36,078 nt of DNA, taken from contig JAHLWZ010000968.1 in assembly GCA_020536535.1 (NCBI GenBank), forward strand, positions 1 to 36,078. Direction: 5' to 3'. The DNA is from Pelomyxa schiedti (taxonomy: Eukaryota > Protista > Evosea). Shown in pieces: positions 1,019-8,462 of the stretch; the first letter of the stretch is position 1; the number at the start of each line of letters is the position of its first letter. A program made the position numbers and the translations under genes. Under the pieces are notes generated by a model. The model saw only the letters and a program-made list of their open reading frames with translations, searched no databases and had not been told where the DNA came from.

Positions 1019-1020
1019 TA

Positions 1021-1211
1021 CAGGGGAATGCGATTGGGGTGGGAAAATGAGCAGCGAGTTTGCGGGAAAAGATGTGGTAAAAGCAGGAAGGAACGCAGAA
1101 AAAGACACGGGAAAAGCACGGGGAGGGCTTCTAGAATGGGTGTTCTGTCTGGGGCCAACCGACGTGGGGGTCTTCGTTTCAAACAAAAAAAAAAACACAA
1201 AATAAAAAAAA
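1021..1211 (+). repeat. Left terminal inverted repeat (191 bp)
   Basis: Reverse complement of 4003-4193 with 6 mismatches by hand alignment (1075, 1094, 1107, 1108, 1147, 1198). Confidence 0.95.
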
Positions 1212-1233
1212 ACCCCACCTGTGTAGACTGCAA

Positions 1234-2682
1234 ATGAGTAATTCGTACCCATGCTATGTTGGAGACGGTGTCTACTATGAGGGTTTGGTGACTTCAGAAA
1301 GCCAGGGTACATTTGCGATTTCCATTCTAACCCTCACAATCACAATCACAAGCACCAAGCCCACTGCCATTAGTCCCAGAGCCCTGTACTCCTCTCCCAG
1401 CCTCACAAACGCCTCAAGGTAGGTTTCACTCGAACTCTCAGGTGCCTCACTGTTTTCTTTAGGCCGCAAGAAGAGAGCAGCCTCACGGAAAGCCAAACCA
1501 GCAGCTCCACCCACAGATGAGGTGTTGACACCATCATTGAACTGCTTTTGGTGTAGCTGCCCTGCACACACCATCAGACATCGGCCCAAGAGCACTGGTA
1601 TGCCCTCCACCTTGGAATAGTAAATCAAACTTACTACCTTACAGCTTCCAACCAAACTGTAACAATACAATGCCGATGTGATTGCAGTGGCCATTCAATA
1701 CGACCCTGTTTTGGTTGGTCATACAGCCTGCCTTTCTTTTCATTTACCAGTATTAAGCTTGTACCAAGTGCCATTCACTTGCGCAGAATGGTTTACTTTG
1801 TGTATGCCAAATACCAAAGGTTGATCCAGCAGCAACAAGTTGCCCTCGTTGTTTGCTTCCCTACTGTACTTGCAAGTACATGGTTTCCTTCTTTTCTTAT
1901 GAGTAACCAATCACAGTCGGTGTCAATGCCACTGTGGGGATTTTGCCCCTGAAGCACATGAGTTTTGGTTGGATTCTGAGAGAGTTTCCTACAATCGTAT
2001 AGTGCAAGACCGACTCCAAAAGACCAAAAAAGAACAAGAAGCATCTGCAAGGGTTGCAGCTATGCATCAGTTCCCTGTCTTGCAGAATATGCTGAAAGTG
2101 GCTGCAACCAAGAATGCCCAGGCAATGAAGGTGCTGCCTGTGGAGATGCTGTATAACTAGTTTGCAGGTCCACTGCCTGAATCAGCTCTCACACAAGTGC
2201 AAGCACCCAATGCTATAATCCCAGAACCAATTCTTCCAGCAGTCCATAACCCTGTGACCATCATTACTGGTGCATCGAATACTACTACCCCTTCTGCTGC
2301 TGCACCTCAAGCTCCTCCTGCAACTATTGCAGTTGTCCCACCCAGTGCTAAAAAGCTGCGAGTTGAGTCCCCTGTTGTCCCTGTTCCAGGCGATGCACTC
2401 CAAGCAGTGACTGAGTTATGTCAAGCTATGTCAGATTCCTCAGAAGAAAGGAACCGCTTTGTATTCACCTTCTTTCAACAAGTTGTTACCAGTTATCAAA
2501 GGTATACACTGGCTCTAAGTTCAAGCTGACTAATTGTTTGTAGCAATGTGAAAATCTTCCAAGGAGAGCCAAAGAAGGTACTTAAGAACTTCACAAAGTT
2601 TGTGGACTGGCAACTTCCGGGTCTCGCACAAAAAATCACCAAGCACCCGGCATCAAACCCTCCGCCAACATCAAACAGCTAA
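1234..2682 (+). CDS. Transposon passenger gene: spliced Cys-rich (putative Zn-binding) protein of about 384 aa, function unknown
   Basis: Hand model with GT-AG introns 1307-1352, 1419-1462, 1598-1644, 1714-1757, 1876-1916, 2131-2160 and 2502-2543 gives an open 385-codon frame. It contains CFWCSCPAH, CRCDCSGH, CFACTKCH, CVC, CPRC, CTCNRCQCHC, and basic motifs GRKKRAASRKAK and PSAKKLRV. Introns 4 and 6 are the least certain. Confidence 0.65.
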
Positions 2683-2695
2683 GTCTCACTTTCCT

Positions 2696-2775
2696 AAAAA
2701 AAAATTACTTTTACCGGATTCGAACTAAGGATCGACGGTGAAATAACCAAATATCATCCGCTTCACTAAAAGTTT
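2696..2775 (-). ncRNA. Degenerate tRNA-like (tRNA-Glu TTC-like) Pol III cassette
   Basis: Minus strand has A-box TAGTGAAGCGG (2768-2758), a TTTCAC loop-like segment, B-box GTTCGAATCC (2725-2716) and a T9 tract (2704-2696), at tRNA-like spacing. Cloverleaf stems pair poorly, so this is not a canonical tRNA. Confidence 0.5.
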
Positions 2776-2796
2776 TTAGAAGAAGGACTCTTTGTT

Positions 2797-3997
2797 TTAG
2801 TAAGGATGAGATGTAAGCCCTGGGACTAGGTAGTGACACCCCGACGTGAATTTTTGAACCAGGTGCGGGGAAATTAGGGTGGTTGAAGAGTAAAGGTACT
2901 GTTCCAGGTTTGATGCATTAATCAAGCCCTGATGAACTCGCAAGTTGCGTTTAATCTCAGCAAAGCAATTCTCAATCCATGCTAGATCAGGGCTTGAATG
3001 GGGACTAGAAGAAGAATTAGTCACAGAAGGAACTGGGAACTGAAACCGAGGGATTAAGAGATGCCCCTGGCTTTTGACCAGATCGAAAATTTCTGTGGCC
3101 AGGTGTGCCCTGTGGTTATCCATCAAAATCACGCGATGTTGATGGAGCAGTGCTGGTAGCAACATGAACTTTAACCAAAGGTAGAAGATGGAAGTGCACA
3201 GAGTTTTTGGAAACACCCAGGGTGCAACAGCACCCTGATTGACATCAGCGGCCATAATCAAGCTGAATCTCTTTGATTGTGCAGGCTGTTAAAGTGTTAC
3301 AAGTAATGGATTTAATAGATGCTAACCATTGGAGTCCTCACAGCCTGTCCCACCAAGGAATGGCCCATGCGCCTGACTGTAGAGAGCAAATCACATCCCA
3401 TTTCATCTAGGTCAATCAGAACCTCAATTGGCAGGCCAAAAATCCTAGAATTCAATGCGGGGATGGATTGTGGGAGAGAGAGATATTTCAAAGGTTCTTA
3501 CCCTGGGGGATTGTTAAAAATTGTGTGAGAGAACCATGCTTGTCTTGCAGCTTCATTTCTCTCCCCAATAATTTTTCCAACTGTAAAACGAAGCACAAAC
3601 CCAAGCTTCTTTGTTGCCCGACTAATCTGCCAAACACTGCATTGAAGTGATGAAAATACAAGCCTTGTACTTACTTCACATCCTCGCCTGTCACAATCTT
3701 GAGAAATTGACATGCCTCCTCCCTGGAGACAGTTGGGTACATCAGCTCCAGCCAACATAATGCATACAGAGCAAGGAAGCTCATTTTCATGGGGCGGCCC
3801 CCAGCATGTGGCACAAAAGACACCCCTAGAGTTGTTCCATCATCACAGTTCGAAAAGGTGTTGGGGGTACCTGAATTCCACCATCGATAGATTGTGCTCA
3901 CACTGACTCCAGCTTCTTTGGCTAGATCTGTTGCGGTAGTGTCTGGCAGAGTGAGACGGTGCAGAACCGATCTGCGCTTCCAGAGGGGGTAGCTCAT
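2797..3997 (-). CDS. DD34E transposase (Tc1/IS630 superfamily), 340 aa, 4 introns
   Basis: ATG at 3997. Removing introns 3637-3674, 3445-3501, 3286-3326 and 3005-3046 leaves 1,023 nt in one open frame. N-terminal HTH ATDLAKEAGVSVSTIYRW. Catalytic motifs IDLDE, MDNHRAH and SPDLAWIE, with 34 residues between the second D and the E after splicing. Confidence 0.92.
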
Positions 3998-4002
3998 TTG
4001 GA

Positions 4003-4193
4003 TTTTTTTTATTTTTTGTTTTTTTTTTTGTTTGAAACGAAGACCCCCACGTCGGTTGGCCCCAGAAAGAACACCCATTCTAGAAGCCCTCCCCGTGCTT
4101 TTCCCACGTCTTTTTCTGCATTCCTTCCTGCTTTTACCGCATCTTTTCCCGCAAACTCGCTGCTCATTTTCCCACCCCAATCGCATTCCCCTG
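4003..4193 (-). repeat. Right terminal inverted repeat (191 bp)
   Basis: Inverted copy of 1021-1211, followed by TA. Confidence 0.95.
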
Positions 4194-4273
4194 TACTAAA
4201 CGAAAAAGCAAATCTTTTAATTAATTTCGCTTAGGAGAAACGGAAAGCGAAGTGACACGCAACAGAGTATCAA

Positions 4274-5638
4274 CTACAGGATTGGGTAAGAGATGGCCTC
4301 AGCAATTCCGCACATGTCGGTGCCCCTTTCTATGCGCTGTGTGTTGATTAGTTACAGAAAGGGATAATAAATTGGGGATTATGAGACATACGATGTATCC
4401 CTTTTCTCCCCACGTTGCACCCCAGCTGTTCTTTACTTTCCAGTATGGTGTGCCTGCATCAGTACCGTATCCAACAAGAAGAACGACGTGGTTCAGGACA
4501 CCACCGGTGCATAGTGGGTTCTTCATTATTCCGCCGGTGTAGCTCTGTGCACTTGTAAGTGAAGTTATTCAGCAAGCACAATTAATGCTTCATTCAAGCG
4601 AAAATGGAATGTATACACACGCTGAAGTAATTGGCATTGAGAGCAATTGAAAGCGGACCAACGTTCGCAAGAACGTCGATGAGAGCAGTCTCATCGTAGG
4701 CCTTGGTATCAGTGTTCTGAGTGACGCATGCATAACCGCTGATGGAATATGTTGTGCTGAAGGTCTGGGTGGAGGGGCATTCGTATACATCCTTCACTGA
4801 GTATGGGAACTCACTCTCCAGTGGAATTCCGTTGACAATGTGAGTGGGAGATGCGGCGTTGGAAAGGTCTGGATGAAATAAGCTCAATGGAAACAAAGAG
4901 GATTGGACGAATACACACCATCAAATGCAGTCCATGGCCATCCACCATTGCATCCGTTATTGCATACCGTTGTGTTTACCTTGTGGTAGATTTCAGTAGT
5001 GCACCCACGGCTGCACCCAGCAATGTATGCCTCTGACAGAGAGTCAGTGCCAGTTTTGCCCCAGCCAGCGAAGCCAGCCTGTTGGCCAATTTGGCCCTCG
5101 ATTGCCTCAGCAGTGGAGAAAGACCAGCAGCTTCCGCAGGAGCCTTGGTTCTTGACAACTGTGACAACATTTGCATTTGTGCTCCAGTCCAATGAATCTG
5201 CGGCTATTGCGCGACGGCCTTGTGCGGGGGTTGGAAGATAATCAGCCATGATGAGGCATGACTTGGCAAAGTATGTTGGATCAGCCGCCGGCATCAAGTA
5301 TTGGCTCCTGAACCTAAACCGAAAGGTGAGAAGTTAATAATGTGGAAGGGGAAGCACTCACTCCTCATCAGTGATGTCAGAGAACTGCGTCTCACCATGC
5401 ACGTTGTTGATCTGATTGAGCTGAGCAGCCTTGCGCATGTTTGACTTGTAAACCTTGAGCCTGTGCATATACTCGGCACCCTCGTAGTGCTTCCCATACC
5501 TTTTTTGTTGTTAACTCTTCCATGACAGTGGTGCAAAAAAGAAGGAAAGAGTGTGTGTTACTTTGACAGGAAGCGATCAAATTGCTGGTCGGCAAGAACA
5601 ACTGTTGCCAACAGAACGAGAACAAAAACTGCTTTCAT
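4274..5638 (-). CDS. Papain-family (C1A) cysteine protease with signal peptide and I29-type prodomain, multi-exon
   Basis: Signal peptide [16 protein letters not shown]; prodomain-like [12 protein letters not shown]...[12 protein letters not shown]; catalytic motifs [21 protein letters not shown] and YWKVKNSWG; GCNGGWP; C-terminus [20 protein letters not shown]. Confidence 0.95.
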
Positions 5639-6063
5639 GTGTGCTTCTTTGTTGTTTATTTGTTTCTTTGTTGTTTTCTATTCGTTGGGAAAATGGAAAA
5701 GAAATTCTGTCTTTAAATGGCCAAAACATGAACAAATCTCATTCTTTGGGGCAAGCCCAGAACTTCTGGAGAACAGGCAACATTTGGGGAATCTAATGCT
5801 TGGGGATTATCTGGCTTCTTCCCGGGAGTCCCGGTGTCCTAATTCAGCTGATGTGCCCCCCACAACTAGTTCGACCCCACATTCCGGAATGGAAGGGCCG
5901 AAATTCCGCGAAAACAACCAATGGCTGGTAACGCTGCAATCTGCCTTGGGCACTGAAGGTTACTCAGGGCACGGCGCCACATTCGTTCTTCGAGGCTGCC
6001 GCGGTTTTGGTTTTTCCCAAGCAAAAAAGCAAAGGCCTCCAGGGGATTTCACCTAACACAAAG

Positions 6064-6551
6064 ATGAGTAACAAGGAGGCGGCAACGCAGCAGCACGTCA
6101 GGCACCGACGACGCCCGACACAACAACAACAAGATGCACCATCGGAGGGACCAGTGGCGTTTGTTGCCCCCGACGAAGACGATGTCGAAGTAGACGGAGA
6201 GGGAGAGGGAGCGGGAGGAGCGAGCAACGAGGAGCAGGAGGAGGAGGAAGTGGTGGTGGGCAGCAAGGCCAAGGCGGCGGGGAGACACCGAGGCAACAAA
6301 GGAGGCCGCCACCACCACAAGGAGGAACAGGAGGAGGAGGAGGAGGAGGCCGCGGTAGTGGTACTCGACGACCAAACAGAGCACCCCGGAGACGCCGGCG
6401 GGGAGCCCCCCCCGCAACAGACGAAGAAGAAGAAGGGGGAGAAACCAGCCAAGGGCCGGGGCAAAGGGAAGGGGAAGGGGAAGGGGAAGGGGAAGGGGAA
6501 GGGGAAGGGGAGGGGCAGAGGCAGGGGCAGGGGAGGCAGAACACTGCTGTC

Positions 6552-6585
<34 letters not shown>

Positions 6586-8462
6586 TCAGAGTCCCCGTAT
6601 GAAGAGGAATCCAGCGGGAGCGAGTACCGCGAGGACACCGACGGGAGCGGCAGCGACAGGGAAAAGAAGAAGCCCGCCGAAAAGCCCAAGTCCAAGAAGC
6701 ATCACGGCTCGAAGAAGGAAAGGACGCAACAGGAGGCGGAACCGGAGCCCGAGCAAATACCTGCCAAAGAAACAAACGAGAAAAAACCTATCAGGAGTGC
6801 TCCTGTGGCCCAAAAGCAAGAAGCTGATATGCGCAGAAAAGATACGCAGGCTAAACCCCAGGCAAGCCACAGCACCCCAAAGTCAAAAGGCGGAAAAACC
6901 GCCTCACCTGAGACAGAGATAGCACAGGTTACAACCCAATCACAATCTGGTGAGAAGCTTTGTGTTCCATCCCCCAAAAGGCATAGACCAGCTGCCTCTC
7001 TTGTATCATCTGCACCTGAGGCTTCCCGTTCTTCCCCTCTCGCCCCTCGTTCTCCACAACCAGTAGCTCTCAAATCCAGTCCCTTGCTTGCTGAACCCAA
7101 CATTCCGACATGCACGGTACACGCCACATGCATTTTTCTGATTCGAATTGTTTGATCTTAACATTCGCAGACTTGCGCGGAGTTAGAACAAGTTGTTGCA
7201 GGAATGAAACGCGAATACGATCTATTAACAAAGGTATTCTATTTTGCCTAAAATTCCATTATGGCAAACAATACACCACAGAGTTATAACCAAGCTCTGA
7301 GTGATGTTGACGAGAAACTCCTTGGTTTGTTGACAAAATTCCCTCATTTTATACACCCATATTTCCATTATAGTGAGCCAGGAGATGATCGACAGTGTAC
7401 TCTGTGAAAACAGTGACATCAAAGCTAAAGGTAAAACCAACGTTTACTTGCCCATTTCTAAGATTGGTGAAGTGGACATTCTTGAAAAGGAAAGGGCAGC
7501 TTTACTTGAAAAACTTAAACAATTAGAGCAATTACCAAATACTGCCCCCACACCTGTACCAGCTGCATCTACATCCGCTCCAACACAGCCGCAAGAAGTG
7601 ATTAAACCGCAGGAAGAGCCAAAAGCAGAACCGAAGCCACCCAGCACACCTGTACCGTCTTCAGCAAAGAAGCACCCCAGGCGCTCCAGTATTGCTTCCG
7701 CCAACGTTCCCGCCACACCTGATCCTACTATTTCTGCATTGAGGGCGCAGGTTCAGTTATTTTCAAAGGTACATACCGTAACTCTCACGTTAGTGCCACT
7801 CAAACTCTTTAGATGTTGGGAATCAGTGTTGTTCCCACTGCCGGAAATATGTTCACCTGTGAAATAGTTGGCGCCGCCTTAAGTACGCTCTCCATTACAA
7901 TCTTCGCGAAATGCGGGGACAACTGGGAATAACTTGCACTAACTATGACAACAGAAATGAAGTTCACACTCCACGTGGAGGACAACGAAATTGAATATGA
8001 CTTGCTGCTGTGCGACGAGCTTTCAACCGGTATTTAACCCCCAATTTGCATAGCAACACCGGAAATTCCGGATTCTTACCCCCGAACCCAAAAGGTGAGA
8101 GCGGCACCAACAGGCTGCCGGAAATTCTTCAAGGCAAGCTCGGGTTCCAGCCAAACGAGATGCCGGTCTTCACCTACTCGCTCCTATCAGTGTTGCTCAC
8201 CGACACTCCCGCCGCACCACCTGACATCTCAGTCATTTCAACATCCCCTCCACAGCAACAGCAACCATCAACACCACCAACAGCAACAGAAACAGAAACA
8301 ACCGCACAAACAACAACAACAACAGCAACAATAATCCCATCCACGCCACAACCACCTCCACAATCACCTCCCCCTCGTACTCCATCATCATCATCAACAG
8401 CAAGCACCCCGGCACCAACACAGTCCTCAGTCAAGATGCCCGCAACAACCAACAATCTATAA
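6064..8462 (+). CDS. Coiled-coil protein with a long acidic and GK/GR-repeat N-terminus; candidate Csm1/Pcs1 (monopolin) subunit
   Basis: The spliced C-terminal domain ALRAQVQLFSK|MLGISVVPTAGNMFTCEIVGAAL|KMKFTLHVEDNEIEYDLLLCDELST|GESGTNRLPEILQGKLGFQPNEMPVFTYSLLSVLL resembles, from memory, the Csm1 RWD-like domain and is preceded by coiled-coil exons. The gene is well supported; the identity is tentative. Confidence 0.55.
6459..6585 (+). repeat. Coding microsatellites (GGGAAG)n and (GAC)n
   Basis: Encode a GKGKGK...GRGRGRG tract and an 11-Asp run. Confidence 0.9.

Follow-up and report, generated by a model that had tools for sequence, protein, structure and literature searches.

Introduction

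Tc1/mariner elements are the textbook transposons that need only their own transposase; hence, they cross easily between species and are used as gene-transfer tools. An element of the amoebozoan Pelomyxa schiedti raises the question of whether this self-sufficiency holds throughout the group. It lies at positions 1021-4193 of a 36,078-nt stretch of DNA (contig JAHLWZ010000968.1 of assembly GCA_020536535.1, forward strand; hereafter the window). Between its inverted repeats, it carries a transposase gene and a second, convergent gene for a cysteine (Cys)-rich protein, here called the partner. An earlier note, made from the sequence alone, had described the element as a three-part transposon composed of a spliced transposase, the convergent Cys-rich gene, and a central tRNA-like cassette. 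In this study, we aimed to establish which of these parts belong to the element, whether its relatives share the second gene, and what the partner protein may do. We are highly confident that the element represents an IS630/Tc1-type, TA-inserting, cut-and-paste family built as a symmetric two-gene unit, in which the pairing of a DD34E transposase with a partner rich in Cys and histidine (His) is old and selected.

Materials and methods

The P. schiedti assembly searched comprised 52 Mb in 5337 contigs, and the 1021-4193 copy sits on the contig referred to as C968. Database searches were performed exon by exon or with spliced proteins supplied by the databases. Exons were joined solely for the counting of codons and Cys residues, for the spacing of the DDE residues, and for the ratios of nonsynonymous to synonymous substitution rates (dN/dS). 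The plus-strand exon model of the partner gene was built from reading frames and GT-AG sites before it was compared with RNA.

Results

The transposase and the partner are paired in six subfamilies

The 1021-4193 copy was the only complete copy of its subfamily in the assembly. Partial sister copies were located on contigs C268, C5039, C1695, and C3190, together with solo ends, and a six-frame genome search with transposase exon 4 recovered about 14 further, more distant copies. Five other subfamilies with the same two-gene layout were recognized, giving six in all, with transposase identities of 49-66%. Convergent homologues of the partner adjoin the transposases in loci L040-L046 and L048, and their exons share the Cys patterns CxCxxH..C, then CxxC..CxC..CxxC..CxC, and then CxCxC..H..W.

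With genome-wide profiles, partner exon 6 (profile A1) gave 21 matches. For 10 transposase copies on eight contigs, such a match lay on the strand opposite the transposase at a distance of 0.8-1.8 kb. A complete, stop-free exon 4 was present in nine of the 10 (C968, two on C753, C1578, C572, C449, C511, C633, and C714), and the tenth was a partial copy on C572. The sole complete-length exon 4 without a partner match, on C601, has two stop codons, and all partnerless transposase matches are truncated or stop-bearing. The second gene reads as a conserved trait of the family and not as a one-off capture; loss of the passenger gene from the other copies, which would point to such a capture, was not the pattern found. 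A typical Tc1/mariner element has the transposase as its only gene, and in this respect all six subfamilies differ. The two-protein family proposed in the earlier note is borne out by this pairing, by the convergent arrangement of the genes, and by the selection and co-divergence described below.

Element boundaries were located in four subfamilies; all are TA-flanked and enclose 3.0-3.6 kb. Across subfamilies, the ends start with CAGGGG, CAGTGG, or CACC. They measure 240 bp in the C511 and C633 copies, at least 149 bp on C753, and 20 bp on C449. The C511 and C633 copies lie at different loci and are 99.94% identical, which indicates recent movement. The transposon family is real and probably recently active.

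Inverted ends and target site of the 1021-4193 copy

The copy in the window is bounded by terminal inverted repeats of 194 bp with seven mismatches between the arms, and a TA stands on either flank. The inverted repeats had been noted before with a length of 191 bp, which is corrected here; the TA flanks had been read correctly. When the terminal 23 bases were searched in all fetched loci, TA preceded 10 of 10 distinct ends of this repeat family, and the flanks were all different. The TA target thus characterizes the whole family and is no coincidence at this site. TA also flanks elements L041, L042, L045, and L046. Two hallmarks of the IS630/Tc1/mariner (ITm) superfamily were accordingly found, namely terminal inverted repeats that bound the element and a TA target-site duplication, the latter at this copy and at the other family ends.

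The transposase gene reads as intact

The transposase gene occupies the minus strand from an ATG at 3997 to a TAA at 2797-2799. It has five exons, 1023 nt, and 340 open codons, and its four introns (38, 57, 41, and 42 nt) are all GT-AG. The predicted catalytic residues are D166, D248, and E283. Between the second D and the E lie 34 residues (DD34E), the spacing that defines the Tc1 family, and the same spacing occurs in P0008, a spliced paralogue from the public databases. The D, D, E triad is invariant across the six subfamilies.

Exon 4 matched Pfam DDE_3 above the gathering score (E value 4e-7), and exon 5 corresponds to the DDE_3 tail. Exon 1 matched HTH_7 barely over the cut-off (E 3e-5); a second helix-turn-helix (HTH) was seen by eye only. 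The contiguous frame of exon 4, its in-frame intron, and exon 5 matched the NCBIfam IS630 profile at 6.7e-8, below the full-length cut-off. P0008 matched DDE_3 at 1.8e-18 and the IS630 profile at 4.9e-16, the latter again below the full-length cut-off. The best solved-structure matches of P0008 in the PDB were the Sleeping Beauty catalytic domain (E 0.008) and SETMAR (0.045), a hint of a place in the Tc1 clade; these weak matches came from spliced P0008 only, and a PDB profile search with exon 4 gave no relevant match. A word-based search of 5.8 billion proteins with exons 4-5 returned one P. schiedti paralogue and nothing else, and the exon-4 profile found no relatives in JGI metagenome contigs and IMG/VR viral contigs. 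With a catalytic domain of the DDE_3/IS630 type, membership of the transposase in the ITm superfamily is well supported by sequence. The transposase gene of this copy is, by its frame, splice sites, and motifs, the intact 340-residue spliced gene that it had been taken for.

Selection, co-divergence, and mirror-image gene starts

Purifying selection was assessed in two pairs of copies. Between C511 and C714 (94% identical), dN/dS was 0.30 for the partner (Fisher p 6e-4) and 0.20 for the transposase; between the two C753 copies, it was 0.40 (p 0.012) and 0.21, respectively. These estimates rest on small substitution numbers. Among the closest copies of the window subfamily, each comparison offered just 3-7 substitutions, too few for a signal. 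Judged by these ratios, the partner gene is under purifying selection. Over the six subfamilies, pairwise identity in one gene is correlated with that in the other (r 0.57, a value reached by 22 of 720 permutations). Identities range over 16-39% for partner exon 6 and 49-66% for the transposase; the partner evolves faster.

The transposase and partner frames were found to open with a shared ATG and shared first codons in each of three subfamilies checked, within the inverted ends or just inward of them. In the C511 type, both proteins begin M-S-C-Y-P and the ATG lies within the inverted repeat. In the C753 type, both begin M-P-R, and the matching sequence is just inside the repeat. In the 1021-4193 copy, both starts are at CAAATGAG just inside the arms; the first residues are M-S-N-S-Y-P in the partner and M-S-Y-P in the transposase. 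The partner gene is built into the symmetry of the element. The shared starts, together with an RNA 5' end in the left arm (see below), suggest that each inverted end serves as the leader, and probably the promoter, of one inward-reading gene. Within the limited literature searched, we know of no described Tc1/mariner family with this mirror-image design.

The partner gene is transcribed and spliced

The Cys-rich gene on the opposite strand is real, and it is transcribed and spliced; the RNA comes from a sister copy. A 571-nt contig from single-cell RNA-seq was spliced at 1307-1352, 1419-1462, 1598-1644, 1714-1757, and 1876-1916. All five coincide exactly with predicted introns, which are 41-47 nt long and have GT..AG borders on the plus strand, and this RNA confirms the splicing of the gene. 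The 5' end of a 212-nt RNA contig falls at 1053, inside the left inverted end and right behind the Smart-seq template-switch oligo, and the contig continues into exon 1. Four of the five bases upstream of 1053 resemble the 3' end of the oligo, and strand invasion is possible. The libraries of the P. schiedti genome paper were prepared with Smart-seq2 and Nextera (PMC8887013). With contig C5039, the spliced 571-nt contig has in common the letters 1555G, 1795C, 1821A, and 1919A as well as a 14-nt deletion (1686-1699), and the variants of the 5' RNA contig at 1094, 1107, and 1147 agree with the C268 copy.

In the window copy, exons 1-6 comprise 234 codons with 20 Cys and are followed by an in-frame TAG at 2158-2160. 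Past the TAG, the same frame is open over 2168-2501 and, after a 42-nt GT-AG intron (2502-2543), over 2544-2682. At the TAG site, a sister fragment on C1695 is longer by about 43 nt; the additional letters complete a canonical, correctly phased intron of some 46 nt, and an intron at this site is retained in other subfamilies (L040/L041). Relative to C1695, a deletion of about 43 nt has thus most likely removed the intron donor along with the last part of exon 6, which leaves a truncated product. The partner gene of the 1021-4193 copy is probably cut to 234 amino acids by this deletion. Truncation at 2158 would remove the C-terminal block that is conserved across subfamilies; if that part is needed, the copy would have to rely on partner protein supplied by others. 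Of the earlier description of a second, multi-intron gene on the opposite strand, the gene itself and five introns stand. Its seven-intron model through 2682 is not confirmed: an intron of 21 or 30 nt would be needed at the TAG, shorter than all introns of the element, and no RNA covers it.

Two other readings of this site were considered. The TAG as a sense codon was set aside as being without supporting evidence. C1695 as a processed (spliced) copy was rejected, since its 115-nt gap lacks GT..AG ends and its other introns are kept. The C1695 fragment (contig region 1-3736, positions 299-799) is a rearranged piece of the partner gene with parts of exons 4-7, from which 115 nt and about 215 nt have been deleted; it lies just upstream of an unrelated open frame of about 440 amino acids and keeps the donor that is missing at 2143-2167 of the window. 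Public DNA contigs carry a 6-nt TCACAA insertion at 1333, in partner intron 1, as well as 1407G and 1431A, all as in C268; hence, these contigs may mix closely related copies.

Composition and relatives of the partner protein

The partner is about 250-540 amino acids long and has about 18-20 Cys and several His in fixed motifs. The Cys and intron positions are conserved across subfamilies. The protein also contains a helical stretch, low-complexity linkers, and a conserved C-terminal block, and basic clusters resembling a nuclear localization signal (NLS) occur in the partner sequences of every subfamily. The exon-6 profile, searched against 1.84 billion representative proteins, matched seven. 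The best six all belong to P. schiedti and are hypothetical proteins; three are identified by their NCBI names (e.g., Pelo_9610) and three by matching loci of the P. schiedti genome; the seventh is a protein of 1062 amino acids (E 2.5e-5). No clear relative outside P. schiedti was found in this search, and a word-based search of 5.8 billion proteins with the Cys-rich region returned the self-match only. A complex prediction with P0008 (the C-terminal half of the transposase) and P0003 (a partner) scored 0.00, which counts neither way.

Possible roles of the partner

PIF/Harbinger elements are two-gene DNA transposons whose transposase needs a second, DNA-binding, NLS-bearing, Myb-like protein. 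From this analogy, and from the composition and conservation of the partner, we infer candidate roles in zinc binding, in the nucleus, and as a cofactor. Modelled on the Myb-like protein of PIF/Harbinger, the partner would bind DNA at the element ends, aid nuclear entry of the transposase, or do both. The overall explanation that we favor, with modest confidence, is a selected two-gene family in which the partner acts as a cofactor of the transposase. That the partner is specifically a zinc-binding nuclear factor needed by the transposase is proposed tentatively, as slightly short of probable. More tentative still is the fuller proposal of an undescribed Pelomyxa clade of ITm elements that needs two proteins, with a zinc-cluster cofactor that would be obligatory, lineage-restricted, and expressed as the mirror image of the transposase.

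Several observations weigh against the favored explanation. No intact partner gene was found in any copy of the window subfamily, and no intact partner mRNA was seen among the public RNA contigs. The RNA variant letters fit sister copies and not the 1021-4193 copy, and the 14-nt deletion is a frameshift in partner exon 4; the transcribed sister copy is therefore itself defective. Transposase transcripts were not seen in the public single-cell RNA contigs. The small substitution numbers behind the dN/dS values belong here as well. All partner exons and five spliced public partner proteins gave sub-threshold noise only in Pfam. A feature search of the ESM Atlas with the Cys-rich region scored 0.80-0.81, which is chance level, and an AlphaFold2 model of that region from a seven-row alignment had a mean predicted local distance difference test (pLDDT) value of 55 and was unusable. 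Finally, partner exon-6-like sequences at C912:46988-47200 (E 1e-20), C893:20772-21002 (1.5e-10), and C720:66799-66897 (2e-4) lie on contigs without a transposase exon-4/5 match; they may be free-standing host paralogues or remnants.

We consider it unlikely that the partner is dispensable for cut-and-paste transposition and acts as a regulator, be it a repressor, a copy-number control, or a counter to host silencing. Such a regulator would be conserved and selected along with the transposase and would bear nuclear-type basic clusters, as the partner does, and the much faster evolution of the partner suits a conflict with the host. Sequence data alone do not separate a regulator from a cofactor. 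Equal expression from both ends, as the mirror-image starts suggest, would mean joint production of the two proteins, and this is no less compatible with a cofactor than with a repressor.

A single capture of a host gene by an ancestor of the elements, with the gene carried along ever since as hitch-hiking cargo that has no role in the element, is a poor explanation of the same data. The partner-like matches on C912, C893, and C720 could represent the host source, and the partner has decayed freely within the window subfamily, as shown by the 43-nt deletion, the 14-nt deletion, and the fragments. Useless cargo should decay; yet the partner stands in a fixed place and orientation beside nine of the 10 transposases with a complete exon 4 (the tenth has two stops), its dN/dS is 0.3-0.4, all its motif Cys and its intron positions are kept, and the inverted end incorporates its start codon.

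Retention of the genes through use by the host (domestication or mutualism) and not through transposition, as proposed for the ciliate TBE elements, appears highly improbable. All TBE genes are under purifying selection (PMC4724952), and the dN/dS range is alike here. Against host use, the copies occupy different TA sites, the near-identical pair at two loci suggests ongoing movement, and non-autonomous derivatives and solo ends exist. Programmed DNA elimination is not known to occur in Archamoebae.

The spacer between the two genes

The earlier note had correctly given the gap between the two stop codons as 114 bp, and it had placed RNA polymerase III (Pol III) boxes there. ARAGORN returned no hit. 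Rfam gave nothing at the gathering score, and no tRNA family appeared in 2600-2900 even at E<=10. tRNA models therefore return no cloverleaf with A and B boxes. One B-box-like 11-mer with a single mismatch is present on the minus strand; such matches number two in the window against 1.87 expected. Compared with shuffles, folding of the spacer gave z-scores of +0.13 and -0.64, and neither strand is extra stable. The spacer is merely 47 nt in the sister subfamily L041, and none of the public RNA contigs lies on it. The central tRNA-like piece is, by all these comparisons, a chance resemblance. With one B-box-like 11-mer at chance frequency on its side, and with the tRNA models, the folding, the short L041 spacer, and the RNA contigs all against it, an element-owned, Pol III-transcribed tRNA-like gene can practically be dismissed. 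In the absence of such a part, the label "three-part" and the supposed added RNA fall away.

Derivatives, rearranged loci, and feature coordinates

A TA-flanked, non-autonomous relative of 1.65 kb lies at 3467-5119 of C191 (10000-19000) and retains only a 74-bp trace of the partner. Its two 181-bp ends share 98% identity, and their identity to the ends of the 1021-4193 copy is about 80%. Solo ends of the C191 subtype occur on C1734, C1368, C197, and C1288. On C268 (7000-15149), positions 3718-5021 and 5255-6558 form a perfect inverted duplication of 1304 bp with 100% identical arms and a 233-bp spacer. It contains the left end and partner exons 1-4 of the sister copy, with the break at the equivalent of window position 1683. 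The P. schiedti genome was amplified by multiple displacement (PMC8887013); hence, this duplication is probably an amplification or assembly chimera and not a real foldback element.

Locus L048 (C572:1-9726) has three partner and two transposase copies stacked in 9.7 kb, with runs of N. In L040 (C714:73000-82500), the CAGTGG termini at 3141 and 6013 lie within an 81-bp inverted repeat (3077-3157 and 5997-6077) whose arms reach past the termini; a nested insertion or longer ends are possible. The Cys-rich exon 5 of this copy is shortened by a stop.

Elsewhere in the window, about 12 copies of a purine-rich GGGAAG microsatellite unit and then a (CGA)11 run occupy 6458-6585, which explains the extreme AT and GC skew of the bin 6001-7000. 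The features of the 1021-4193 copy are listed in Table 1.

Table 1. Coordinates of the features of the transposon at 1021-4193 and the basis of each assignment.
Feature	Position	Strand	Basis
Left TA (target-site duplication)	1019-1020		Direct reading; 10 family ends likewise preceded by TA
Left terminal inverted repeat, begins CAGGGG	1021-1214	+	194 bp, 7 mismatches to right arm
Apparent 5' end of partner mRNA, in left inverted end	1053	+	212-nt sister-copy RNA contig
Partner exon 1, ATG 1234	1234-1306	+	RNA joint 1306/1353; start context common with transposase start
Partner exon 2	1353-1418	+	RNA joints
Partner exon 3; basic NLS-like cluster, first Cys/His motif	1463-1597	+	RNA joints, translation
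Partner exon 4; CxCxC..H..C motif	1645-1713	+	RNA joints; homologous exons in other subfamilies
Partner exon 5; 8 Cys	1758-1875	+	RNA joints; homologous exon in L041
Partner exon 6; CxCxC..H..W and helical stretch; ends at TAG 2158-2160	1917-2160	+	RNA up to 2011
Probable deletion scar, about 43 nt lost relative to C1695 (exon 6 end, donor of ~46-nt intron)	2143-2167	+	Alignment
Former exon 7, open frame severed by TAG	2168-2501	+	Frame; conserved C-terminal block in other subfamilies
Former exon 8 after 42-nt intron; stop TAA 2680-2682	2544-2682	+	Frame, GT-AG sites
Spacer of 114 bp between both stop codons; chance B-box-like 11-mer at 2716-2726, no RNA gene	2683-2796		
Transposase exon 5; E283; stop TAA 2797-2799	2797-3004	-	Frame, Pfam DDE_3 tail
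Transposase exon 4; second catalytic D248	3047-3285	-	Pfam DDE_3 E 4e-7
Transposase exon 3; first catalytic D166 in DLDEMG motif	3327-3444	-	Reading frame, cross-subfamily alignment
Transposase exon 2; end of putative second helix-turn-helix	3502-3636	-	Reading frame, GT-AG sites
Transposase exon 1; ATG 3997; helix-turn-helix DNA-binding region	3675-3997	-	HTH_7 E 3e-5
Right terminal inverted repeat	4000-4193	-	194 bp, 7 mismatches to left arm
Right TA	4194-4195		Direct reading; family ends likewise

Discussion

A second selected and co-expressed protein kept through deep divergence would, if true, mean that the self-sufficiency of Tc1/mariner elements is not universal, or that the second protein deals with a difficulty peculiar to the host, for example entry into the nucleus, chromatin, or silencing. 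If two proteins are indeed required, the Pelomyxa family would be the first two-component system of the IS630/Tc1 superfamily outside ciliates, and Gizmo, an archamoebal lineage, might connect it with the multi-gene elements of ciliates. The architecture is testable, with inverted ends as mirror-image leaders and both genes opening with the same codons.

The Pelomyxa element resembles Tc1 elements (Tc1 and Sleeping Beauty) in inserting at TA, in the length of its inverted ends (about 200 bp), in a probable HTH region at the N-terminus of its transposase, and in a DDE_3 domain with DD34E, and the solved structure closest to P0008 is that of Sleeping Beauty. It differs from them in having a second conserved, convergent gene, in starting both genes at the inverted ends, in its very divergent transposase, and in the short spliceosomal introns of both genes.

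PIF/Harbinger elements likewise have two genes and serve as the model for the proposed cofactor role; the likeness is functional and hypothetical only. The Pelomyxa transposase belongs to another superfamily and is of the DDE_3 type, its target duplication is TA and not the 3-bp TWA, and the partner has no Myb/SANT match. As to the Tc1/mariner elements that carry Fanzor or TnpB, Pfam found no RuvC-like TnpB/Fanzor domain on the partner exons or spliced proteins.

Within the same amoebozoan lineage, the Archamoebae, the Entamoeba Tc1/mariner families Hydargos, Gemini, Piglet, Mogwai, and Gizmo have been described (PMC2657916). In contrast to the Pelomyxa family, they have no second gene according to the limited literature searched, the comparison being one of descriptions only. 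The genome papers of P. schiedti (PMC8887013) and Mastigamoeba balamuthi do not mention transposons, and the P. schiedti transposon genes are at present annotated solely as scattered hypothetical proteins.

Multi-gene relatives of IS630/Tc1 are known from ciliates, namely TBE, Tec, Sardine, Thon, and Anchois (PMC4724952, PMC3464196, PMC7325037). TBE of Oxytricha has three frames, including a 22-kD and a 57-kD zinc-finger/kinase protein, all under purifying selection (PMC4724952). Anchois of Paramecium is 3.6 kb long and encodes a DDE_3 transposase and two hypothetical frames (PMC3464196). Tec of Euplotes and Sardine and Thon of Paramecium have a tyrosine recombinase gene. In one phylogeny, the TBE clade is the sister of Gizmo of Entamoeba invadens, an archamoeba (PMC7325037). 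The ciliate elements and the Pelomyxa element share an IS630/Tc1-type DDE transposase with extra frames inside the inverted ends, one to three of them in ciliates. The Pelomyxa element differs in having exactly two genes and no Pfam match to a tyrosine recombinase or a kinase, and its ends (CAGGGG, CAGTGG, or CACC) are without the telomere-like repeats of TBE. As to a relation of the partner with the 22-kD, 57-kD, or Anchois ORF2 proteins, the exon-6 profile gave no clear match outside P. schiedti among the 1.84 billion proteins. Pelomyxa is an amoebozoan host that, unlike the ciliate hosts, is not known to eliminate germline DNA from the soma. Since multi-gene IS630/Tc1 relatives exist in ciliates, the kind of element is already known, and the suggestion of an undescribed two-protein family holds in a narrower sense. 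Novelty, as far as checked, lies in the partner, in the lineage of its host, and in the symmetric design with gene starts in the terminal inverted repeats.

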